Source: Oopsacas minuta
Taxonomy: Eukaryota > Animalia > Porifera
DNA length: 64,000 nucleotides
Assembly: GCA_024704765.1 (NCBI GenBank)
Contig: JAKMXF010000318.1
Span: 1-64,000, forward strand
Reading direction: 5' to 3'
Under the pieces are notes generated by a model that saw only the letters and a list, made by a program, of their open reading frames with translations, did no database searches and was not told where the DNA came from. Each line of letters starts with the position of its first letter. Position 1 is the stretch's first letter. Made by a program: the position numbers and the translations under genes. Positions 6,417 to 26,926 of this stretch are shown here, piece after piece.

Positions 6417-9400
6417 TTAAACAGGGCAGCTTGACGTAGTTGTGTTGCTTCCAGAACTTGGGGAATATCTGGTTTGAAGCTCAACATATCTTGAAACAGG
6501 TTGTACACGTCGATCAAGTGAATTTATATTCAATTCGAGTGAATCTAAATGGCAATTTTTCTTCTGACAAGGGAAGGTATGATCTCGAAACATTTTAGAA
6601 AGTGTGTATGTTGATACAACAGTCATAATGATAATTATGACAACCAAAATCAGTGTAAACACACCTGTTATTGAGTATAGTATCAACATATTTGTGCTTA
6701 AATGTCCATCAGGATTAGAAATATGATTATTAACTTGTAATTGGAATTCTGAATAAGTCATTATTTGCTTGAGATGGAAGAGAGAAGGATGTTGTATTGA
6801 CAGTAATATTGCAATAGTTTCTTGTGGAGATTTGAATGTGTGGTATGGATTGTTGCTATCTGTTCCTGATGCGGTTATAACGAAATATGTCCTAGAAAAT
6901 AGTAAATATATAAAAATGGTTTGTATTTCGTACTGTAGAATTCGCTTTTTAGCAAGTTGTATTTGTACGAAATTCCCTTACTATGTACGCAATGTGCGAA
7001 TTTGCTATTAGAGGAACTGGAATTATTTCAATATAAAACATTATTAGCTAACCAGAAATAATACATGTAATTCAAAGTACTAAAAAACTTACAATCCATC
7101 AAGGTAGCGGTCATGTGTGTAGAATTGTAATGCTCTTTGGTCGTGTTTAACGGTAAGTTTGTATTCAAAATAGGAGCATATTGTTTGAGGATTTTGATTT
7201 AGAGAGTTGTTAATCATGAATACAACTGCGTAATCTTCTAGCCAGGATGGTAAGTTATTGATATCTTGTTTCTCTAGCGACCTGCAGGTGTCAATTTTCG
7301 CATCACAAGGCCCTAACGTACATTCTAATTCAGTTGATACACATTTGCATGACTGACATACTTCCGTTGTAGAAACAGTATCTACGTCATCATGGTATAT
7401 CGTGTGTATTACATTGCCTTCATGAGTCAATTTCCCATTTGTAAGTTCACAAGCATCTAATGTTACTTCTATAATAGCAAATAATTAGTATTAATTCATA
7501 GATAATACAATTATAAGTTTCAAATAATGCAATCGAAAATGACAATTTTATTTGATTTACACTCAACTCCGGTTATATTGAACCTCAAAGGATCGCGATA
7601 ATTACTTAGATATTAGCAAAATTCGACTGATGAGATTAATTTTTCTTTGAAGGTTTGGACAATATTTATGCAATTTTAGACTTCGAAATAAGTGTGTATT
7701 TCGATATATTCCTAGAGATTGACTATACTAAACTTACCATCACTGCACTTAGGACAACATTGTCCAGGTTGTATTGTAGATAATTTGCATCTGAGTTGTG
7801 GACAGCTCTCCTCTTCACACATAGTAATACCTTTCTGTAAGCATGTACAGCTCTGACATCCGTCATCCCAGATAGCTCCCACTGGTTGATGTGTATCATT
7901 ACTAGATATACAGTAATTCATTCCTAGTGTTTCTAATGGTGGATTTGTTGTATCTGAATTTGGGGTCTAAAACATATGTATATAATATGGAAATTATGTT
8001 TTTAGGAATTATTGGCATTTTTACAATTTATGCAAAACTGAGTTAGAAAGACTTACATTTACAATATCATTGGTATCGTTTGCAGTGCAAGAAGGACAGC
8101 ATTTACCTTCCATGACAACCTGATTGGCGGCTGGGCATGGGAGGGATGGACAGTTATTCCGTATGCATACAGTACGTCCTCGTGCACAAATACAGTTATG
8201 ACAAGAATCTGGATACCAAGTCTCATCTTTGAAATGTAATATCCCTCTGTGAATGCAGGTTTCGTTGTGGACTATAAAAAATGTATAAATGCTTTCACAA
8301 AAATTTGTATATAAATTCAATGTTTACCTGGTACACAAATATCCTCATTACAACAGGAGCCTGGTTTTCCATCTCCCAGACTCTCCCTTACCCTGGTGAA
8401 ACCGTCAGGACAATTAATGACGTCACAATGTAAACAAACGCAATCTTGAGTCTGCTCATCCCAAACTGAATCTTCCGGGCAGAGTGCATTAGTTAAATTA
8501 TCTAAGAAAATGACATTTATAAAGTCAACAATATTGAACTTTGACAGATGTTAGATTGACAGATAATTACACTGCACTGATTCAGGCCTTATCAGTTCAA
8601 GTCAATTTGTTTCTTATTTTTAAAGGAATTTGTGATTCATGTTTCCAAAGTTTCTAGTCATCTTGGTTGCAAAAATTAATCATCTTTGAATACAAAAGAT
8701 AAATAAAAGTAGCATTAGCTCGTTAATTAGGTTTCAGCAGTACGGGAAGTCCTTAAATAATGACGAATACCATCATAAGTACATTTAATTATACATGATA
8801 TTGTGCTAGTTCTCTTGGTAATCATTATAAGACAGGATGGCATTGAAAACCATGTATATTATATTGTGAAGCCAATCCAACATTCAAGATACAATAATAG
8901 AAGAATGTGTCACGTATTTTCTTGCATGAGTTAACTGGTTGAAACTCAAAAAGTTAAATAAAATTAATATTTACTCCGAAGAGCAACAAATTTTTTTGAT
9001 AAAAAACTATTTGTTAAAGAATCATCCCAAATATACTCAAGTTTTTTGAAAATATTGCAAATATAGGCAAGTTTCGAATTCTATATTTGGAAATTTTTCG
9101 TCCGAGAAAGGGAATGAATTATATCATTAGGTAACTAAGAAGAGTACAGCTGGGTAAGTTATGTTGAGTCAAGTGTCTATGTTAAATTATAATTAGATTT
9201 GTTTGGGATTCCTCTCGTATATTCAAGCTGACAATAAATTTCCATCATAAAGATAAACAATAATAGTTACATAATGTTGCAATATGGCAACTAAAAGTAA
9301 ATACATGAATTTGCAACCGTGTTTTACAGCCAAAAAGTACTATTTCCATTTTTACGTTTGATAATATTTAAAGATAGCTATGACCATGCGAATTACAAGA

Positions 9401-12400
9401 AGTAAGAAATTAGGCGCCAAACGAGAGCTCGAAAGTGATACTGATGGAAGCCAAGAAGAATTATCACAGAATAAGAAAGTGAAAGTTTCTCCAGAATCAC
9501 CAATGCAAATTACTACAATCAATCCAATAAAAATGTGTTTGTTTTCGACTCAATTACGAACCAAAATTACCCCAAAATTCGCAGAAAATAACACTATCGC
9601 TTCAATACTAAGCTTACCTCACCCGAAAACAGGCCACGCGACTACTTTTGCATTAACAACCGATACAAATGAGCTCTGCGAAATAAAAATTTTCTCGAAA
9701 ACATACAAAACAATACTAACTCCAAATAGAATAATTAGCAGACCTAATATCTACTTCATAACACCATTTGATCCGATTTTTATCCTCCTCGCCCTGTTAG
9801 AAACACAAAATTCAGATCATTACTGTTTGATAGAGCAATTGCTCTTCAATACAGAGTTTGAAGATCTTCGAAAAATTATTCCAACTTTCAGTCAATATGT
9901 CATTGAACTTATTTGTGATACGAAAATACATGACGGCCAAATTGCATGCAAGTATAGCAAAGAAAAAACTATGTCAACGTTAGAATCAAAAGTGCAAAGA
10001 GTCGCAGAAAGATTACAAAATCTTGATTCTTTTCAGTCATGTTACAAATCAATTGTTTCAACAAAAGATGGTGCATTAAAGTATGCGATCAGTTTGGTAA
10101 ATGAATACCTAACTAATAAACTATCGGGAGATCTCGCTATACATTTAGGTCTGACAGATTACAGTCATTTAATAGCAGAATGTGAACAAGAAGTTAGAAA
10201 AATGCAAGTCGCTTCTGTTACAGAAGTTGAAACGAAAAAAGGCACAAAGAAACAACCTCCAAAGAAGCAGTCCAGAGCAAAGAAGATGTTAGAGAATACG
10301 GATAAATCTGGAATGAAAAGTTTATCAACTTTCTTTACGAAACCCAAAGATTAGTAGCTATTTGATTGAGTTAATAATTTACCTTAGAATTGGCATATCT
10401 AATCACTTTATTATTAATAAATAATTAATGTAGAGCAGATATATTATTTCATCAAAATGTGTGGTAATATATTTAGAGGTTAATTTATAAATAATTAAGG
10501 CGATTAGGTGGATTGGATAAGATTTATCAAATCGTAGAAACGTAGTATATATTTTATGTATGTAATTACAAAGACTTTTTAATCAAGCACGAGTAATTTT
10601 AAAGTGAAAATATGACCATTTATGCGTTAGATATCAAAATTATTCGGCTGTTCGCACTCACAACTTGACCACATAAGTACACACTAGCATTTAATTATGG
10701 CATCTTCGGGTATATGAAATTGCAATACAAATATTATTCCTCAATACTACACAATACGTATATAGGTGGACTACTAGGCATATGTCATATTTTCAAATTT
10801 CAACATGTACAGTGAAACAAGCTTATAACTAACACGCAGTAGCGAATTCACGGATATAATGAAGTATTCCTACAGACTCGCGGTTATTGCTAATAAATTT
10901 CACCCTTCTGAATAAGTTCCACTACACAAGTGTGATTATTACGAATGAGTTCGCTATAAGCGTGTTCACTCTAAATGCATAGAGATTAATAGTTGGGAAA
11001 ATAATTGGTTCATTTTAGTACAAAACATCAACAAGTATTTTAGAAATTCTAGAGTGACTAAAATACAAATAATAAAAATATAGCTATGGTAATACTCACC
11101 TCTGTATGGCATACAAATGTATGTGTCACAACATTCACCAGATAATGCTGCTGGCATTATCATAACTGCTAACTCATTATCTCTACATGTAGGGATCTCA
11201 CAGGTTGATCTTCTGCACACACATTTTCCAGAAGTTGGACAACAATTTCTGATATTTCCAGGTTTGTAAATTTCTCCTTCTTTACAATCAATTGGATGAT
11301 CTTCGATACAAATTGCATTGTTGCACTCCAAATGGTCCCGATCAATATCTAGAATGAGTAATCGTAATAATATCGCTGATTATCTAATTTGTCAGTTCAG
11401 TTTTACTATGGCATATAATTACATAATAATGTAATTGCATAGAGAAGCTAGTCCAGCTAATTAGTACAAGCTTTTAAACAGGATTCAAATATTATTACAT
11501 ATCTTGGTTACCAAACGGACACTTTGGAATTTAACAACCATTGGATAAATAGAGTATTGATTTTCTCATAATTTCATAGTTGTAGAAAAATGCGTCAACT
11601 CTTAATTATTATTTATTACCTTGGCAAGTGCCTTGTTCTGAATATGGATCATCTCGCATGCAAACTAATGAGTATAAACATCTCCCAAGTCCAGGACCAC
11701 ACGCTTCTCCTACGAATTTGGGACAAACCTAGCGGATTAGAAGGTAAATAACAACAAATAAAATAAGTGTGAAATATGCCATAAATATTCTGAAACCATC
11801 AAATAAACCTAGTTTAAAATCCATCGATATGATAAGTGTGGAAATTAATTACAAATATTTCCGAACACCTTGGAGAAATTTAAACAAATTATAATGGCAA
11901 AAATTAGTTAGGAAGTAAAGTGTCATATCAGAGAGGCCACACTCGTTAAAACCAGATAAAATCAACTTAGTGTAGAATCAACACGCCGTTAGGAAACCTT
12001 AACACTACAAAATGACTTCTTACTTAGATTCTAATTCAAAGGTTTTGTTGCTAGCGTAGCCTGCTTCTCCGATAATTCTATACTAATTGAGGACTACTTA
12101 TATCTGATTTACTAAATGAGCAATGCATTAGAACAATTATAATGCTATTATCATTATTGACTGTTAGGGAATTCAATATATAGGAGGTTCATTTAAATGG
12201 AAATTTTCTATTGTTCTTCAATCAGACTTGAGTACTCTGTGTAGACATTTGTCTGAGGGTAGTTAGATTATTACTACTTAGCTTTAATAATCCCTAATTA
12301 CACATATTTGTATGGTAGTGCAGTAGTAGGATTAATTCGTCTTTATTTTATGCTCGAAAAAACTGAGTAATTTACTTGTAAAATACACTTTTTTTGAAAT

Positions 12401-13476: not shown

Positions 13477-16400
13477 TCATTGTATTTGGCATGTTTTGCT
13501 ACCTGCTTCCTGTAGCTTAATAACTCCCTTCATTTGATTTACTTCGGTAGCTTCCATTAGGTCAATAAGGTCTTGGGAGAGTCTCTCATTCGCTTGAGCA
13601 TATTTCAATGAACTATTACCTGAATCATCTACAGCAAACACAGATGAATCACCACGTAGTAGCAATCTTATTGAATCTTCTACTCCCCTTTTACACGCGG
13701 CATGTAACACTGTTCTACCTTTACTGTCGCATTGATGGACATCAAAATGTTTCTTATAAGCTTTAGAGTTCAACAGCAATTGAAGATATTCGGAAGTAGT
13801 TTGTATTGCAGCTACGTGGAGTGGTGTTGAGAGATCTATATTAGGTTGTCCGAGTAAAACAGGATAACGTTTTAACATTGGAGTAATGCAATTCATTGAT
13901 TGATTGAAAATAGCAAATGATATATAACTCAATCCTTTAGAATCTAGTATAGTTATATCTATCTCGTATTTTAACAACATTTCTATGTGTACTGCGAATC
14001 CGTTTTGAATCGCGTAATGTATGGGTGAAAAACCGCATTTATCAAGTTTATTCAAAACCTGTTGATTTGCCTTTTTCATCAATTTCATTAAGCATCCTGT
14101 TGCCTCCAATTTGCAAGCTAAATGATACGCATTTGATCCAGCATTATCAAATAATGTGACGTCAGCACCATGGTTAAGCAACATACTCATGAAGGATACA
14201 TGACCAAGCTGTGCAGCAACTAGCAAGGGGGTAAGTCCAGATTTATCAATGTGATTCACGTTGGCATGTGAACGTATAAGTTCAATCCCTATGCGACCTT
14301 GATCACTAGCTGCAGCGTAGAATATTGCAGTACGCTTTTGTTCATCTTCAAAATTGACTCCAAAGGTTAACACTAAATTCTTTAACACGCCCATTCTACA
14401 ACCACTACGACAGTTCTCGAATAAAGGATGTAATTCATAAACTTGTATAATATTTTCTACGTATTTTTCGGTTAAATTTCCTATCAAAACTTTCTCTTTT
14501 CGCTCTACAATTTTAACAATTTCTTCAGTTTGGTTACTCTCAGACAGTTGAGGGTGAATCGGGAGATTTTTCACTGTTACATCATGTGTCTGGAACATTT
14601 CTGAAATTTGATTAACAGCCCCCCCACCCTCATTTAAACTCTTGTCCCATAAAAACCTCTTCCCGCTACCAATACTACTAGAGTTATCTATTACAGTAAA
14701 CGAACTATTCAGAGACTCATTAAGTTGATTTCTATTGATTCCATTTGTCTGGCTCTTATTTAATATGTTCTTCCCTGCATTCCTATTTACATTTTGAATC
14801 ACTATGTTCTGTTCAGCTATTAATTGGTGGTATATCATATCATCATTAGCGATGTCTTTATCATTTTCGTTTGGATTTTTGCTATTATTAGGCTCGTAGA
14901 ATTCAGTATTAGCAGGTTGTAGTACTTTTGTCGCTTCGGACATTAACCGTTTAATCTCATCAAAACTGAGATTACCAGTGCCAGGCTGAGAACGTCTAGC
15001 GTAATAGAATAAGCTCTCAGCGCCAGCGAACACATACGAACCCTCTGAATGAATTAATGCTCCTTGATCTAGTAACCATTGACCAAACTCTTCGGCAGCA
15101 TGCCATTCCTGAATACCTGTAACATTTTCCATTATCCAGGTTGTTATCACGTGTCCAGTGAACACGCTACCTAGGTCTCTACGTTGAAGTACTTCATTGC
15201 TGCCTCGTGCTTGATAACAGCGAGCAGCTCCTCGTAATGGGTCTTGCAGCATGAAGGTGACAACTTCCGCGATCTGAGCATCACCTATATGATATACAGT
15301 GTAAATTGCGTATATTATTATGGATTAGAGATTATATTATTGTACCTTCTGTCTCTACTGTCTGTTCGAAGAGTGGAGTATGTACATGTAGAGATCTTGG
15401 TAGACCTTCTATATTGACAGCAAGTGAAGGGAGATTTGCTGTATTCTTGTTTGTATCAGTTTTATCTGCATTAGGTGTTTCATAATCCATTTGGATTTGT
15501 TTGTTTGGACCTACGTTTTCAGAATATCTTTTATCTACTTGTACCACAGTTACATTAATATTGAATTGTACGTTTTCCTTTTTCGTGTTTTGTTCAGTTA
15601 CGATTACCATATTCTGTTCAGGAGAAGGCATTTCCTCATTTCTGCTTAGAGAATTAGAATTTGTACTTTTTGATGGAACTAGATCTAAAGATTTGGGTAT
15701 ATTTTCTGAAGAATTTTCTAGAACTTTGTTGTCTAACCCTTGTGGCCTATTCGGAAGCGGAGATGTATTTATAATAATTTCTTCCTGAACAGTGTCATTC
15801 GAGAATCTAACAACATCTGTACGAGTTCTAGCTTGGTAATCACTTCGTGATGCAATATTATCATCAGGAATACTACTCTCTAGCTTATTTTGTAGGCTAT
15901 TTTCAGTTACAAGAGTAATTTTGTGATTTGAAATTGAACTTTCTATCTTTTCAGGTTCAGACTTAGTTGTAGCTGAATTTAATGGTTGGGATTTTATAGC
16001 TGGAACATTTTCATTTGTTTCTGCCTGGCTCATTGTTATGACACCTTTTGGTTGTAACGGTAGGTTAGAATCGATAATATTATCTTTAGTTTTCTCATTT
16101 TGAATTTCTGATGTATTTTCAGTATCACTAATAGTTGTATTCTTACTTCTTTCTAGGTTAATTATTTCTTCGTAAATAAGTTCTTCTAACAAATCAGAAT
16201 CACTGTGATTCCTGGCTGGAAAAGGTAATATTTTACCAGAATATCCAGCTTCCATATCCGCGTCATTATCCCGATTAGAATCCTGGTTTGGTGATAGAGT
16301 AATTGCATCATTATGGGTTTCTATTTGTGTCGGTTTAATTGTGTTTTGTGTGTTTTCTCCATTTGATTCAGTGTTTTCAGAATTCTTAACAGTGATTCGG

Positions 16401-18048
16401 GTTACATTTACTAAAGGCGGGTTTGTATGTTCCAAATCTGGAATAGTGCTCGCGGTTTTTTGTAGTTCGGCAGGGTTATAAGTAATCACAGTTTCATTAT
16501 ACATTTTTTGTTGTTGAGGTAATTTAGTCGGTAAATGTGGCACCAAATCACCAACCAATTTCTCCTCTGAAGAAATATTGTTTGGGGTTGTACTCTCAGA
16601 AATTTCCTGCGAATCTATTGTGGGATTTTTTATAAATTTAATATTGTCAACACTTTCAGATTCATCACTCTCTCCTTTTGTTATCTTTAATCTAAAGGTG
16701 TATTCCAATACAGCTTTTTCTAAAGCAATTGCTGCTTGTGTTATATAATCTTCTCCTTGTTCATCTTCATTTTGGTTTGGTAATTCTGAGCCCTGTAGAA
16801 ATAGAGATCATAAGTTACGAAAGGAATTGGCATTTGAGTATAGAAAATTTGCAATTGTACAGCAAATAATAAATTAGTAAAACTCACATTAACATCATTT
16901 TGTGTCTGTGTACTTAACTCTTGCATGTAAATATTCATAAGTGCCTTCTCAGCGAATATCCTACGATTTGGATAATTCCTAACCAACGCAAACTGATGTG
17001 CAATGCTAAGAATTTGACAAAGCTCATTCGAAGATTCCTCCTCATTCTCATTTAACACGAACTTATCGGGTACTACAGTGATAACGCAAGTTTTACAAGG
17101 ACCTCCTACTCCATCTCTTAACAGAGTACATAGTGGATTTTGAATAGGAAATGTACTATCAGAAATATTCTTAGATTTCATATGATCTAATAGAGATTTT
17201 AGTGGGTCGATCGTATTGGCTGTTAAAAGAGATTGGTTACGTATATCTAATGTAGTAGTGCCTGTTTTTGTCTGTGAGTTTGTATTAGTGGAAAAATAGT
17301 CTGTCGATAATGTTACAAAAGTAAGCTCTCCTCCTATAGGAGCAAACGAAGCAGAAAATCCAGTGAAACCAACATTGACACACATAAACTCATGATAGCC
17401 TAATTTTGCGAGATTGCTAGATCCGTCTTGCGAAATTTCGGATAGAAATTGTGAATAATTCCTATTAATTAGTTGTTTAAGACTGTCTATACTTGTTATA
17501 GTTGTCTTAATAAGTTTCTGCTGTCTGCCTTGAACATCACGGAATAGATAGGCAGCTGTTTCCAACCCACGACACAAATCAAACACGTGGCAATCCTCTA
17601 TAGAAAGTGCATAATGTGAAAAAAGTACTTGAAAAAGTTGCGTGTGTTTACATTTGGAATTGTTGATACAATAAAATATCTGATCAATAGATTCGTATAG
17701 AAGTTCTAATGGTGTGATTTGTGTATTTTTTAGTTGAATATGTGAACTTTGCAGGAATATTATCATACCGTGATATCCAATGAGAGTAGCTTCAATAAAT
17801 GAACGAACATTGTGCCAGTAGAAAGGCTGTGTTTCAGGGTCATATACGATTTTACTTACGTCATAAGAGTTTATGGAAGCTTTGGTGGATTGTGACTGGA
17901 TTAATATTGTGTTAGCGTGGGAAGCATCGACTTTAAGCAGGTAATTTCCTGTGTTAGAGATTGGTAATATATGTGAGAGAGATTTGGTTGTTATTATAGG
18001 CTGGATAACTATTATTGAAGTGATAGAGCAAATTTGTTGTTCGTCCAT
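13477..18048 (-). CDS. About 1470 aa multidomain protein: degenerate kinesin motor domain, low-complexity linker, DEP domain, ankyrin repeats. Exons 16888-18048, 15346-16792, 13477-15284
   Basis: Three track ORFs join in frame through GT-AG introns 16793..16887 (phase 0) and 15285..15345 (phase 1). Kinesin-like segments: ATLIGYHGMI, FQVLFSHYALS..VFDLC, LCTLLRDGVGGPCKTCVITVVP. DEP-like: MLQDPLRG..FTGHVITTWIM..AEEFGQWLLDQGALIH..F...LFY. Ankyrin: GLTPLLVAAQLGH, GFSPIHYAIQNG, STPLHVAA, GRTVLHAAC. The exact start (ATG 18048) is uncertain. Confidence 0.8.
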
Positions 18049-19558
18049 GGAATTGTATTCGTGAGTCTCCAAGTGTTTCTAATGGGGAAATTCTACTACG
18101 AAAATATATCCAACAAAATACTTAAATCAATATATGCAGTCAACTGCCGTTGCATCGAAACTCAAATGACAGCGATAATTATTTCCATATATAGGAAGTT
18201 TGGTATAACCGATAAAAGTTATGTTCTTTGGGAAAATATTCGTACAATTTCAGACTTCGAAATAATCAGGTATTTCGGTATATCCGTGTTCGATATCACG
18301 GGGAGTTGTTTGTAATCTCAATTTGCTTCATCAACAAAATATATATTAGCTTATTACGTATTTAATTTCTCGAAAATATTTACAATTATCATCAAAAAAC
18401 TCCGCCTAGAATATCAATTAGCAAATCACAAAAATTCAAATTTTATAGCTATTGTGATAAAAGTATCCAATGCATTTTTCTGTCTAATGGGAATTTAGTT
18501 CTGAATATTTAATTTATATAGAATTAACTAACCAAAATTTTGATTAGAATGATACAGAGATCGACATCTCAAAATATTTAGTGTTGAATATAATTTGGTA
18601 AGTCAGAGAAGTTAATTAACATATTTGATTGAATGGATAATTCATTTTCGTTGAAAATTATATAATTGTAAGACTGATTGCGAAAATTGGTGTATAATAA
18701 TATTACATTCAGTGATAGCTGTTTTAAAATATGCAAGCAAGCAAAAATAAAGAAATAATCTGTTTCTAAAATTTTCATAATTCCTCGATATCGCAAACTA
18801 TGATTGCTCGTCATTAATATCATTAATAACGGATATATTAGAGAAATGATTCGAATCTCAGTAGAGCTAATACTGTATAAGAGACAGTTTAAAGTTGTAA
18901 TCTCATTTATTTTAATTAAAATGAGGAAAAATAAGTTCCATATAACAAATCATAACAAGAGAGAAGGTTATTAAAATAGTAATTAATTGAAAAGTTAACG
19001 AATTAATTCCCATGAAAGATAAAAGCTAATCAATAGAGAAATAAGTCTATGAAAACATACAGGCACGTACGAGATAGGATAAATTATGATAATTATTAGA
19101 GAAAAGAAATTCTCCAAAAATAACATAGGTTAACATAGGTACATGGCAATGACAATTAGTTAACATAAGTGGATACAAAAACATGACGAGACATCCCATC
19201 GATTTAATATCCCACTTTCACAAAAATATTTCGCATATTTTCACATATTAACAAAGAATAACTCTGGTAATTAAAGAAAGTTTCCTATTGCATTATTTAT
19301 TTACAGTTGCTAATCCGAAAAATTTTAGAACATTTTCCAAAGGTTGTAAAACCTTTAGGGCTTGTTCGGATTAGCGATGGTCTATTGTAAATGCAAAAAT
19401 ATAATCAGCTGACATAGAGTTGTATGCAATCGAGATAAATACGCCATTATAAAGTTCCCATAATATAATATTGCATTGTAATTAGCCATTGAAAGAAAGA
19501 CAACAATTACACACTACATTCAAGAACATTATTTATAGAAGTATTTCAATACAAATCA

Positions 19559-20383
19559 ATGGCAGAGGGAACTAACCAAGATCTAATTCCAGCAGATCAC
19601 CATGAGGAGGAAAAAGTTATTTCTAAGAAAAGAAAACGAGCTCTCGCAAAGAAGAAAGCAATTGAAGAGAAATACCATGCTCCTACAAAACAATTAAAAC
19701 TAGCAGGACGTGGCATAACTTCATTAGATCATTTTCCTACACTTCTACAACTTGACGAATTAGATTTATCTGATAATGCGTTAGAAAACAGTCTGGAAGC
19801 TCTTATTGAAAGTACACCTAAAATATCCATTCTTGATCTAACTGGAAATAAGTTTTCAGAAATAAAATCGTTGAAACCATTAGCGAATCTTGAGAATTTA
19901 AAAAATTTATCGGTGTTTGATTGCCCTTTTACAACCAATGAGAATTATCGTACCGAAATATACGAACTGTTACCGAATTTAATAATACTCGACGGATTTG
20001 ACAAGAATGAGAAAGAACTCAAAAACAACGAAAGTAACAAAACAGAAATACAACAACCGACAAACTCAAACTCCCAGGAGGAGAAAAAACCTGAAAGTTC
20101 ATCTGAAGACGAAGGAGGCGAAGGGAAAATATACAAAGAATTTTTAAGAGATCGTGCTGCTTCTGATGATGAATCAAAGGATGACGATTTTAACCCAAGC
20201 AACGAGGTTTCTAATAATACAGAAAATACATCTGAATCAACGAGTGAGAAAGATTATGATGAAGATACTTCCTCCCAACTATCAGATTCGGGACAGGAAA
20301 GTCAGAATTCTCGTTCTGAAGATGAACAGGAAACAGATGAACCTAGCGCGAAACGAAAGCGGACAGACTCAAATGGAGATTAG
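19559..20383 (+). CDS. ANP32: ANP32-family acidic leucine-rich nuclear phosphoprotein
   Basis: LRRs (LDELDLSDN, ISILDLTGN, LKNLSVFDC), LRR cap YRTEIYELLPNLIILDGFD, acidic tail and terminal KRKR NLS. Confidence 0.85.
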   Translation: MAEGTNQDLIPADHHEEEKVISKKRKRALAKKKAIEEKYHAPTKQLKLAGRGITSLDHFPTLLQLDELDLSDNALENSLEALIESTPKISILDLTGNKFSEIKSLKPLANLENLKNLSVFDCPFTTNENYRTEIYELLPNLIILDGFDKNEKELKNNESNKTEIQQPTNSNSQEEKKPESSSEDEGGEGKIYKEFLRDRAASDDESKDDDFNPSNEVSNNTENTSESTSEKDYDEDTSSQLSDSGQESQNSRSEDEQETDEPSAKRKRTDSNGD

Positions 20384-20517
20384 TTAACAATGTAAAAGAT
20401 TTCTGTAGTTGAGTCTAAATAGTTAGATAGCATACATCTACAATAGTAACTTGATCTATCATATAATATGTGTATAGGAATTATATTAGATTGATTGGCT
20501 TGTTTCATTAATTGAAA

Positions 20518-21792
20518 ATGTCAACATTTTATACAGCATTGGGGGCGGCTGGCAATTTTAACGAGAAGGTGAAAGACATAGAAGATGAGATAGAACAGAA
20601 GTATAGTGAAATATTCTCCGCAGTGGAGGTTAGTAAACAGAATCTATTACAAAAACTGAGAAAAATCGCAGAATTGGAGGATGCTAGCAAACAGCTGAAG
20701 CACCCAGGAGAAGCTTTGAAACTAGGATTCGATAAAAGTGTTTTAGAACACATACATGCTTGTGTTAATATACATCTTAGCAAAGAGTTTAGAAAATCTG
20801 CTTCATTTGACCCTGATGAGATACCAGAAGCTGTATTCCCTAGATCAGGAAAAGACAGCCTAGATATTTCTTTAGAAATGAAAAGCTCATGTTCCTCGTT
20901 ACCAACCGATTCCTTATCACCTTATTCAACACAATCATTGACACCAATACTACCAACTTCATACAAGAAGAATTCCTACCCGACAATAATCGCAGTATCT
21001 CAAGGCAAAGCAGATGAGAACTTAGAGAAAGCACTTGGTTTAGCTGTACATCCTACCACAATGGATATCTACATAGCTGATGGTGGCAATGGAGCAATCA
21101 AGGTATACAATAAAGATGGTGAATTCAAGTTCAAATTTGGTAGTGATGGTTGTAACCCGTATGGAATAACGTTATACGAAGATCTTGTATATATTACAAA
21201 CTGGGGGATAAGTAATTTTCAGGTTTATAATTGGGAGGGTGCTGTGGTGAAAATGGAGGAAATAAATATACTGAATAAACCTCGCGGTATAACTGTGGAT
21301 AGTGAAGGAAATGCTTACGTATGCTCAACTGGAAACAATATAATTGTGTTTATTACTAAAGATAAACATGAAAGTAAAGTATTCGCGGCAAAACACGTAT
21401 TTCGCGAACCTCGTGACGTCAAAATACACAATGGGAGGATTGTAGTGTTGGATGATGATAACCCTTCGTTGCATTTTTTCACACCTCAGGAGGTTCATCA
21501 ACAATCTATAGTTGCAACCTTTAAACAAATCGTAAACCCTTTTGCACATGCATACATATACGACCCAGCGTTTTTTGACATGAAAAGTGATGGCACAATA
21601 TTAGTGACAGATCGGCAGAGACATTATATAAAGGTCTATTCTCCAGAAGGGAAGTACGTTACGAGGATAGGAAAGGAGTGTGAAGTAACCGCAGGGTGTT
21701 TCAGAGACCCAGAGGGCATTGCAATTGGTGCAGATGGTAGGCTATATAGTGTGTGTAATAGGAGGTCTAAAATGTTACAGATATTCTGTTGA
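20518..21792 (+). CDS. NHL-repeat beta-propeller protein with N-terminal coiled coil (TRIM-NHL-like, no RING or B-box)
   Basis: NHL repeats LGLAVHP..DIYIAD, PYGITLYEDLVYIT, PRGITVDSEGNAYV, PEGIAIGADGRLY. First ATG is at 20518 (the track used TTG 20512). Confidence 0.8.
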   Translation: MSTFYTALGAAGNFNEKVKDIEDEIEQKYSEIFSAVEVSKQNLLQKLRKIAELEDASKQLKHPGEALKLGFDKSVLEHIHACVNIHLSKEFRKSASFDPDEIPEAVFPRSGKDSLDISLEMKSSCSSLPTDSLSPYSTQSLTPILPTSYKKNSYPTIIAVSQGKADENLEKALGLAVHPTTMDIYIADGGNGAIKVYNKDGEFKFKFGSDGCNPYGITLYEDLVYITNWGISNFQVYNWEGAVVKMEEINILNKPRGITVDSEGNAYVCSTGNNIIVFITKDKHESKVFAAKHVFREPRDVKIHNGRIVVLDDDNPSLHFFTPQEVHQQSIVATFKQIVNPFAHAYIYDPAFFDMKSDGTILVTDRQRHYIKVYSPEGKYVTRIGKECEVTAGCFRDPEGIAIGADGRLYSVCNRRSKMLQIFC

Positions 21793-22333: not shown

Positions 22334-23779
22334 CTAGACATCTGTCACTGTAATACATTTATCGATAAATTCAATGAATCTCCTTGCGTATTGTTCAGAA
22401 TTGACTGTAGATATTTGAGTGCTTGTCTTATGTTTAACTGTTTTCGCTGCGTGGGCAGTCTTTTTCTTAGTCCCATAGTTAGTGAGGATATCAACTAGCC
22501 CCATAAAGTATAGCTCAGCTGTAGGTTGTTGTAGTGAGGCAGATTCTTTGGGGATGACGTCATAATCACCTGGAGTAGTTGCAATTGGATCATTAGAGGG
22601 TATAGATTTTGTAACAGGTTCAGGAGATGTTTCTATTAACTTTAGTGTTGATATATCAGGTACATAGGGAAGGCAGTATACGTCAATTGACTTGTCAACT
22701 ACAGGCCAGAATCCCTCATTTTCTGCTACTTCAGCGTCTTTAGAGTTGTCAGCAATGAACGGTTTTGGTTTCAGATTTGTAGCTGGTGTGACGTCAGGCT
22801 CTTCGGCGGTGGATGGAAGCTGTGAGGGTAAGAATGAGGCCTCTGTGCCAGGGACGGGTGGGTTCGCTTCAGGACCGAGTCCGTCATCTCCTGACGAGTT
22901 ATCCTCAACTACGTCGAGTGGCAATACCTCCTCATCTAGTTCTGGATCTTGTAAACAATCATGTACACCAATCAACATACTGTAATCCATGAGATTTTGT
23001 GAAGCCAAGAAATTGACATCTTCTTTCAATGTACTTAGCAGGTATACTTTTGCCTCTTTGGAAACATTAAGTTTATCGTAATCAGATAGGAAATCAAGAT
23101 CTTTTAAAGTTGGATTGGTTTTTAATCTTTCTTTAGGACTGGCAACTCGATCAACTGTCGAACCTTTTAGATCATATTTCCTGTGTGTAGCGAGTTGAAC
23201 TGAGAATATATTTCTCATAACTAACCAATAGCTTTCTCTATTATCCACTGTGATACGATACATACCCAGATAATGCGGTAGTAGAGTTTTACACTCACAT
23301 GCCACAATGTGGAGATGGTAGTTAGGGAGAATTTGATGTACTAAAGCGATTTCATCACTGGTGTGTGATTTTAAGATGAAACGGCCGTCGTGTGTGCGAT
23401 AGAAATTTGCACCTGATCTACCAGGTGACGTAAGAGGAACAGGGGGTAATGAAGTCAATGTATTCATATACTCAATCTCATCTACTCCAAATCTCTCGCG
23501 TATATTACGGAATACAAGAGGGCAGTATTCTTTAAACTTGAAGTGACCAGGAAGATTCTCTTTATTGTAATACTTATTCTCAATTTGGATTTTAGAAAAA
23601 GCTCTGAAATCTTGGTCCAACAACATAGGAGGTTGTTGTACAGTCATTAGTTGTGTACAGGAGTACGTGATGCCCCAGGTAAACACACTTATGAACGGGT
23701 CGTTAGTACGGTAGACGCGTTTCTTAGGGTAGTACACACGATGACCTTTGCCCTTTGAAAACCTACTTGAAGTTGCCAT
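22334..23779 (-). CDS. PIP4K2: Phosphatidylinositol 5-phosphate 4-kinase, type II
   Basis: Motifs FKFKEYCPLVF, PGRSGANF, YDLKGSTVDR, LKDLDF, MDYSMLIG, GLVDILTNYGTKKKTAHAAKTVKH; intronless. Confidence 0.93.
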   Translation of the reverse strand: MATSSRFSKGKGHRVYYPKKRVYRTNDPFISVFTWGITYSCTQLMTVQQPPMLLDQDFRAFSKIQIENKYYNKENLPGHFKFKEYCPLVFRNIRERFGVDEIEYMNTLTSLPPVPLTSPGRSGANFYRTHDGRFILKSHTSDEIALVHQILPNYHLHIVACECKTLLPHYLGMYRITVDNRESYWLVMRNIFSVQLATHRKYDLKGSTVDRVASPKERLKTNPTLKDLDFLSDYDKLNVSKEAKVYLLSTLKEDVNFLASQNLMDYSMLIGVHDCLQDPELDEEVLPLDVVEDNSSGDDGLGPEANPPVPGTEASFLPSQLPSTAEEPDVTPATNLKPKPFIADNSKDAEVAENEGFWPVVDKSIDVYCLPYVPDISTLKLIETSPEPVTKSIPSNDPIATTPGDYDVIPKESASLQQPTAELYFMGLVDILTNYGTKKKTAHAAKTVKHKTSTQISTVNSEQYARRFIEFIDKCITVTDV

Positions 23780-25949: not shown

Positions 25950-26926
25950 TTAGAGTTTGGATTGAAATAATTTATCATGCTCGATATGCTGGATTGTTTT
26001 GTCATCAGCATTAACAATTGAGTCAAATATACCGCGTTTTATTTTCTGTAAGTTTTCCCTGTCAAGAGTGTTATTACCGATAATACGTTTAGCTGCATCT
26101 TGAGCTGTTATCAACATCATTTCCATGCTTGATAGCTATAAATACAGATGGTAAACGTTAAAATTTGAAAAATAAGAATCGCATAGTTTTTTCTCGAAAC
26201 CCCTTCATTTTCAACATTTACTAATTTATATGGAAATAATATGAATTTTCCATCTTTTATGAGAAAAAACACCAGAAAAATCCAATATTTACACTTTCCG
26301 TGGATGGTTAGCAAGATGTCCTTTCATATAGCTCAGTTTCTGACAACTGAACCCTCAAATAATCAAACTATTGTATATAATTCAATATTAAAACTCACTT
26401 CATGTACTAATCCATACTGACAAGCTTTAGGCCCTGTAAACTGCATACTCAGTATAGCAATAGATTGAGTAGTGAGTGGTACTCTATGCTTTAACATCTC
26501 AATCAAAACTTGCAGGCCAAAGTGAACCCCTAACTTTGCTTCAGGAAAACACAAATACCCTCTATCTTCTCGCATTATTCTGTAATCATGGCATACAGCT
26601 AAAAAGGCGCCAGCACCATAGCAATGACCATTTATAGCTGCTATGGTAGGTATTGGAAAAGTCAGAATACGAACTGATAATTGGAACGAAATTTGCAAAG
26701 CTTTTTGTAAATCTAAAGACTTCATTTTGTTTAGTGTTTCAAGATCTAAACCTTGACTATAATTCTTACCATAGCCAATACTAACCATACAGGTAATCAG
26801 CTGATTAGCTTCTATCTCGTCTAGACATCTATTCATTTCTCGCACAGTATCAGCGTTGAAAACGTTTTTGTTATCATCCAAATGCCAAACGGCAAGAGTG
26901 TTAATAAATTCAACATAGAAAGGCAT
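25950..26926 (-). CDS. Peroxisomal enoyl-CoA isomerase/hydratase (crotonase fold), 237 aa; join exons 26399-26926 and 25950-26135
   Basis: Crotonase motifs YSQGLDL, PTIAAINGHCYGAG and CFPEAKLG. A phase-0 intron at 26136..26398 adds LSSMEMMLITAQDAAKRIIGNNTLDRENLQKIKRGIF...LFQSKL* with a PTS1. Confidence 0.85.

Follow-up and report, generated by a model that had tools for sequence, protein, structure and literature searches.

What becomes of a kinesin motor domain once its nucleotide site has decayed, and what might such a domain contribute to a protein that also carries a DEP domain and ankyrin repeats? These questions are raised by a locus of the glass sponge Oopsacas minuta, contained in a stretch of 64,000 nucleotides (nt) that is hereafter called the window (GenBank assembly GCA_024704765.1, contig JAKMXF010000318.1, positions 1 to 64,000). 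Here, three minus-strand open reading frames (ORFs) lie end to end in the ORF listing, at 16741..18072, 15332..16708 and 13477..15252. An original prediction, made from the letters alone, had joined these into one protein with a pseudo-kinesin, a polar linker, a DEP domain and ankyrin repeats, and had proposed a microtubule-to-membrane scaffold, suggesting RNA sequencing of the junctions and a fold prediction as checks. The region 18048..13477 of the minus strand of the window is indeed a single three-exon gene, which is expressed as spliced RNA, and residues 1–387 of its product are, on sequence grounds, genuinely homologous to kinesin motors, though very diverged. The function that we favour, with moderate confidence, is that of a membrane-anchored ankyrin scaffold on which the dead kinesin domain would act as a different binding or regulatory module.

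The structure of the gene emerges from four sequencing runs of one sample (X1–X4), which cover the stretch and whose contigs were aligned to the window. Contigs from X4 reach across the gene between about positions 13551 and 18097 and omit exactly 95 and 61 bases at the two predicted introns, which are bounded by GT..AG on the gene strand (CT..AC on the plus strand). Those from X1–X3 retain both introns, and have the appearance of DNA libraries. The resulting exons and introns are as follows.

16888..18048, minus strand: exon 1 (387 codons), residues 1–387, a degenerate kinesin motor domain (pseudo-motor) and then a conserved helix (..FAEKALMNIYMQE..)
16793..16887, minus strand: intron 1, 95 nt, phase 0, GT..AG with donor GTGAGT (spliced X4 contig and sequence reading)
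15346..16792, minus strand: exon 2 (482 codons plus one base), residues 388–870, linker
15285..15345, minus strand: intron 2, 61 nt, phase 1, GT..AG (spliced X4 contig and sequence reading)
13477..15284, minus strand: exon 3, residues 870–1471 and the stop codon, with the DEP domain, a second linker, the ankyrin repeats and a CaaX-like end

Every peptide quoted in the original prediction was found in the ORFs, and both of the phase-compatible introns that it had placed between them are spliced out in X4 contigs. The joined model is 1471 residues in length, as is P0015 (KAI6649683.1, Oopsacas minuta), the C-terminal 601 residues of which are 100% identical to exon 3. In the searches described below the exons were used separately, one at a time, with the database entry P0015 serving as the full-length protein. 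This entry is already present in GenBank, where it bears the automatic name "Transcription factor inhibitor ECI-6", and the genome of the window holds one copy of the gene.

With regard to the first 387 residues, direct searches are largely silent. No Pfam kinesin match is obtained individually for exon 1 or for any of its eight close homologues (41–70% identity), phmmer of exon 1 against the PDB gave no match, and word-based protein searches with exon 1 and with the DEP region returned matches limited to the close clade. The same type of search with the motor-like domain of the sponge Sycon ciliatum found just two Sycon-like proteins and ordinary kinesins. Profiles reach further: the close-family profile matched kinesins in 55 of 56 PDB hits (E-values up to 10), all 55 of which anchor on the alpha5/L13 motif, with some spanning 90–150 residues, and hhalign against the seven kinesin motors encoded by single exons in the window genome gave a probability of 68.7% and an E-value of 4.5e-5 over 241 collinear columns. 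An exhaustive profile search collected 54 proteins, about 50 of them outside the close clade (E-values 1e-30 to 1e-9), and all nine of the intermediates tested match PF00225 across nearly the whole profile (77–179 bits, E-values 1e-21 to 1e-52). It is this transitive chain through intermediates that establishes kinesin homology. The lowest-ranked match of the search, P0066 (E-value 4.9e-4), is in fact a saposin-repeat protein and was rejected as a family member.

Structural predictions point the same way. Whilst an AF2 model built on a nine-sequence alignment was uninformative (pLDDT 40), one built on a 64-row alignment (A5, in which the seven true kinesins are included) reached a pLDDT of 86.7 and a pTM of 0.89, and a Foldseek search of the PDB with this model placed kinesins in all of the top 50 positions (best E-value 4.3e-18, TM 0.56–0.75). 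An ESM Atlas look-up of P0016 again returned "kinesin". The kinesin layout originally read in the N-terminal region is therefore borne out by the profile chain, by hhalign and by the predicted fold. To which kinesin family the domain is closest is less apparent, as the best PDB matches of the Sycon motor are to kinesin-5, -2, -12, -9 and -4, with no clear family; in a quick unrooted tree, for which the only outgroup was the seven single-exon kinesins of the window genome, the branch leading to the glass-sponge clade is very long, at 2.5 changes per site.

Alignment with these seven kinesins locates the positions at which the nucleotide motifs would be expected.

17731..17754, minus strand: P-loop position, residues 99–106, LQSSHIQL versus GQTxxGKT
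17392..17406, minus strand: switch I position, residues 215–219, KLGYH versus SSRSH (NLAKLGYH versus NxxSSRSH), the His alone kept
17296..17313, minus strand: switch II position, residues 246–251, TLSTDY versus DLAGSE (DxxGxE)

The three substitutions reported in the original prediction are thus correct, and there is no GxxxxGK[ST] pattern anywhere in P0015. In addition, the adenine-binding RxRP motif (N4) reads V.QP, with the Pro alone kept in 9/9 clade members. As all four nucleotide-binding motifs are lost, the domain cannot be an ATPase or a motor. The residues that replace the lost motifs are themselves conserved within the clade, and the retained histidine of switch I (H219) hardly varies in the 64-sequence alignment. 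More broadly, the P-loop and both switches are missing from nearly all family members, with the Sycon group retaining a partial GxxxxGK. An intact P-loop (GPSGxGKT) was seen in just two relatives, P0041 and P0058 (loci L019 and L020), in which both switches are altered, to SLRSAAAH in switch I and DMAASES in switch II. DEP and ankyrin domains were undetected in these two proteins (674–767 residues), which may represent either the last ATP-binding stage of the lineage or a sister family.

Beyond the motor-like domain, four further features can be placed on the protein.

16700..16756, minus strand: short motif that opens the linker, GED.I.QAA.ALE.AV.EY, with invariant columns in a three-species alignment
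14983..15282, minus strand: DEP domain (PF00610), residues about 871–970
13528..14436, minus strand: ankyrin array, residues about 1153–1455, 8–9 repeats with a conserved capping unit HPLFENC..G.L.NLVL.FG (Pfam and Sycon alignment)
13480..13491, minus strand: C-terminal CQIQ, a CaaX-like prenylation motif, invariant in 7/7 glass-sponge-type sequences

The linker of exon 2 has no Pfam match, is acidic and polar (net charge −36), and is only 25–35% identical to its orthologues, with conservation limited to one short motif at either end. In the window, the DEP domain has a score of 30.8 bits (E-value 2.8e-7), as against 34.1, 36.7 and 32.7 bits in the orthologues P0009, L017 and L021, respectively; when a profile of this region was compared with the PDB, five of the six matches were to DEP domains, namely those of DEPDC5, P-Rex1 and Dishevelled, albeit weakly (E-values 0.14–0.56). 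Both the polar linker and the DEP domain are where the original prediction had put them. The ankyrin array that it described is also present (Ank_2, PF12796, E-value 1.9e-34; Ank, PF00023, E-value 1.5e-23), although its count of about seven repeats is too low, as 8–9 are counted by eye, with starts every 32–35 residues and one longer interval. Single-base differences occur within the ankyrin-coding exon at positions 14052 (T>C) and 14223 (G>A) of the window in runs X2 and X3, and are probably allelic. The C-terminus reads ..SK[TS]CQIQ in the 7/7 glass-sponge-type sequences and ..CALM in the Sycon orthologue, with both tetrapeptides fitting the CaaX pattern of a Cys at position −4 and an aliphatic a2 residue; a farnesylated end of this type is the CCIQ of PRL-1.

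The same layout is found in Sycon ciliatum and in several other eukaryotic assemblies. At two related loci, L001 and L002, the three ORFs occur in the same order and in the same neighbourhood as in the window, with the following neighbours being syntenic in both.

9380..10354, plus strand: RNase H2 subunit B
19559..20383, plus strand: LRR_9 protein
20512..21792, plus strand: NHL-repeat protein
22334..23779, minus strand: PIP5K
26363..26926, minus strand: enoyl-CoA hydratase

A conserved and syntenic layout in related genomes indicates that the arrangement is not due to chance. At L017, Kinesin, DEP and Ank ORFs are consecutive, and at L021 Kinesin is followed by DEP. Intron 2 is absent from P0009, P0011 and P0013, in which linker and DEP domain are joined in one ORF of about 802 residues. 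Amongst glass-sponge-type orthologues the motor-like domain is 54–70% identical, with many invariant columns, as opposed to the 25–35% of the linker. The Sycon protein (XP_065176935.1 / P0059, 1484–1493 residues) is collinear, comprising a motor-like domain (E-value 3e-12), a weak DEP domain (E-value 0.002), ankyrin repeats and a CaaX, and the ankyrin array of the window protein aligns to it with 28% identity over 286 residues (E-value 2e-30). The family is thus present in at least the glass and the calcareous sponges, and its occurrence in at least two sponge classes implies that it is old. A literature search for kinesin, DEP and ankyrin in combination, and for pseudokinesins, also with Porifera, found no description of this architecture and no named family that has it.

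Five parts make up the protein: a dead kinesin-fold domain, a long, acidic and disordered linker, a DEP domain, 8–9 ankyrin repeats and a CaaX-like C-terminus. In the scaffold model favoured here, the C-terminal half would keep the protein at the membrane, by way of a farnesylated cysteine and a DEP domain resting on acidic lipids or a receptor tail, whilst the ankyrin array would recruit a client protein. The dead motor domain, held on its flexible linker, would serve as a protein-binding or regulatory module, having presumably decayed early in the family and then been kept under selection for this other role. Prenylation, a membrane location, a role as scaffold and little or no microtubule binding are all proposed from features of the sequence. 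The membrane half of the scaffold originally suggested gains from the CaaX-like end, which had not been noticed at the time. Its microtubule half fares less well, as the basic face of the domain is lost.

This loss is best seen around the one kinesin signature that has been well maintained.

17089..17133, minus strand: alpha5/L13/beta8 motif LCTLLRDGVGGPCKT, the best-kept kinesin signature, with loss of the Arg and Lys of L12 immediately before it (anchor of the profile matches to the PDB, and site table)

The L12 Arg is present in 7/7 kinesins of the window genome and in none of the 57 family members (0/9 glass-sponge-type, 0/3 Sycon-type and 0/45 others), and the L12 Lys is lost everywhere in the family. 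The Arg/Lys of alpha6 (ASRAR) is kept in most intermediate members and lost in most of the glass-sponge clade. In the window protein the alpha4–alpha6 face carries a net charge of −4 (median −3 in its clade) versus a median of +6 for kinesins of the same genome, and the isoelectric point of the motor-like domain is about 6.0 versus about 8.5 in the canonical set. From these values it would appear that the canonical microtubule-binding face is probably no longer used. They bear directly upon the strongest competing explanation, in which the dead motor still binds microtubules statically, in a rigor-like manner, and tethers them to a membrane or receptor as a signalling scaffold. This would suit the kinesin fold retained in the AF2 model, the strong conservation of the alpha5/L13 motif and the alpha6 basic residues that persist in intermediate members, and non-motile kinesin-like domains with microtubule binding do exist (Vik1/Cik1, KIF26, Costal2/KIF7). 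Set against the uniform absence of both L12 residues, the erosion of alpha6 in the very clade to which the window protein belongs and the reversal of charge, we consider static microtubule tethering rather unlikely.

A second alternative would pair the dead motor, as a silent partner, with an active kinesin in a heterodimer of the Vik1/Kar3 type formed through the conserved helix that follows the domain, such that the DEP–ankyrin–CaaX tail becomes the membrane cargo or anchor of a real motor. A helix is present directly after the domain in the AF2 model (residues 362–386), its motif PNKRDLAEKALM.AYM.EL is shared across the family, the linker begins with another conserved helical motif, and potential partners are plentiful, as the window genome encodes many active kinesins. 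Behind the helix, however, there is no long coiled coil, but only a polar and poorly conserved linker, and no kinesin partner was identified (no complex prediction was run). Pairing of this kind is thus an improbable explanation for the conserved domain.

The name given to KAI6649683.1 would make the protein an IkB-like "transcription factor inhibitor ECI-6", with ankyrin repeats that hold a transcription factor in the cytoplasm. Beyond that name and the repeats themselves nothing speaks for this, and a protein of 1471 residues in which kinesin-like and DEP domains are combined with a CaaX-like end is foreign to IkB, which is short and has an N-terminal DSGxxS degron, some six ankyrin repeats and a PEST tail. 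The single DSGxxS of the window protein is found at residue 1423, within the last of the ankyrin repeats, and is not an N-terminal degron. From the same repeats the Sycon proteins P0059 and P0083 were automatically named "Inversin". Both names are misleading because they follow the ankyrin repeats only, and an IkB-like role is very hard to credit. Finally, whilst an ORF-based caller gives the three ORFs as separate products in related assemblies, the notion that they are separate genes, or a pseudogene in decay, can effectively be discarded given the spliced contigs and compatible phases at both junctions, the order and synteny kept in related genomes, the orthologues in which the ORF is uninterrupted across junction 2, and the intact state of all three ORFs with their many invariant columns.

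To return to the membrane-anchored ankyrin scaffold, a number of points weigh against it or temper the evidence on which it draws. Charge, together with a handful of marker residues, is only a rough sequence proxy for microtubule binding, and Vik1 binds microtubules without a nucleotide site. The DEP score in the window is just below the curated Pfam cut-off of 32.7 bits, which P0009, L017 and L021 reach. The CaaX pattern that CQIQ and CALM fit is a motif of only four residues, and the L017 relative ends in ..SVCY, although its true last exon is uncertain. The AF2 fold result is not fully independent, as seven true kinesins were part of the A5 alignment, whereas the sequence chain is independent of this. 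Lastly, X4 is likely to be RNA because its contigs are spliced, the type of library not being on record.

The 5′ end of the transcript has features of its own. The X4 contig that ends at 18097 has 11 foreign letters, which on the mRNA strand read AAAAAACTTAC. No copy of these, as an upstream exon would provide, exists upstream on the gene's strand within the window, and it is this that led to the consideration of a spliced leader. The 15-mer formed by the 11 letters, AG and a GT donor occurs in nine copies in the genome, as compared with two for a control, and six of the copies can be aligned over about 240 nt with a mean identity of 87%, around ...AAAAAACTTACAG/GTAAGT....

18049..18097, minus strand: 5′ untranslated region, with a probable trans-splice acceptor AG at 18097–18096 and an in-frame TAG at about 18081–18079 (end of the X4 contig and sequence reading)
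L023–L028, around locus position 1501–1515: six aligned leader-like elements, ...CTTACAG/GTAAGT...

These elements are probably a family of spliced-leader RNA genes, and the mRNA of the gene probably carries a trans-spliced leader at its 5′ end. The putative leader RNA folds no better than shuffled sequences (z 0.46). In another glass sponge, Aphrocallistes vastus, mRNAs are reported to receive a leader by trans-splicing (PMC10282587). Given the position of the acceptor AG, 18097–18096, and an in-frame TAG between it and the ATG, translation is taken to start at the ATG of 18048, and an upstream coding exon is unnecessary.

Taken more widely, only a few dead motors are employed as scaffolds (KIF26, Costal2/KIF7, Vik1), each of which is informative as to how the kinesin fold can be rewired. 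The present family adds a case in which all four nucleotide motifs and the basic microtubule face have been lost, yet strong purifying selection is seen, and does so within a combination of kinesin-like domain, DEP, ankyrin and CaaX-like end that was not found described in the literature searched. It corrects two misleading database names, "ECI-6" and "Inversin", and offers a tractable test of a kinesin fold that binds neither ATP nor, probably, microtubules. As Oopsacas is without Wnt and Dishevelled, any DEP protein of this organism is also of some interest. At its boldest, the proposal would be one of an ancient, possibly sponge-restricted family in which a motor domain without ATP or microtubule binding has become a new interaction module on a farnesylated, DEP-targeted ankyrin scaffold, and in which the DEP domain of glass sponges might couple a receptor of the Frizzled type to the syncytial cytoskeleton; in this full form it is a long shot.

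Comparison with known systems places the protein close to several, but within none. With IkB (ECI-6) and Inversin it has ankyrin repeats in common and nothing else, differing in length, kinesin-like domain, DEP and CaaX-like end. Its DEP domain matches those of Dishevelled, the RGS7/9 family, P-Rex1 and DEPDC5, both by Pfam and, weakly, when its profile is compared with the PDB, although none of these is known to have a kinesin-like domain or ankyrin repeats. The DEP domains of such adaptors target membranes and receptors. Oopsacas has no dishevelled gene, with glass sponges lacking both Wnt and Dishevelled whilst keeping Frizzled B (PMC10280926). The window protein is therefore not a Dishevelled derivative in that genome, and, since the family also occurs in Sycon, neither is it a glass-sponge substitute for Dishevelled.

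Amongst kinesin-derived proteins, KIF26A/B, VAB-8 and Smy1 are similar in having an N-terminal, non-motor kinesin-like domain on a long and largely disordered scaffold for signalling or receptor trafficking. To our knowledge, they retain microtubule binding and have no DEP, ankyrin or CaaX. The kinesin-4 Hedgehog scaffolds Costal2, KIF7 and KIF27 likewise reuse a kinesin-derived domain as a scaffold near the membrane, but KIF7 keeps its nucleotide motifs and microtubule binding and has a different tail; its PDB match is weak with the family profile (E-value 2–2.7) and has an E-value of 6e-10 with the Sycon motor. Vik1/Cik1 also harbour a kinesin-fold domain without a nucleotide site, which is non-catalytic and visible by structure or profile. 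In these short fungal proteins, the motor-homology domain is C-terminal, lies behind a coiled coil and is paired with Kar3, whereas in the window protein it is N-terminal and fused, without any long coiled coil, to DEP, ankyrin repeats and a CaaX-like end, and the charge of its microtubule face has been lost.

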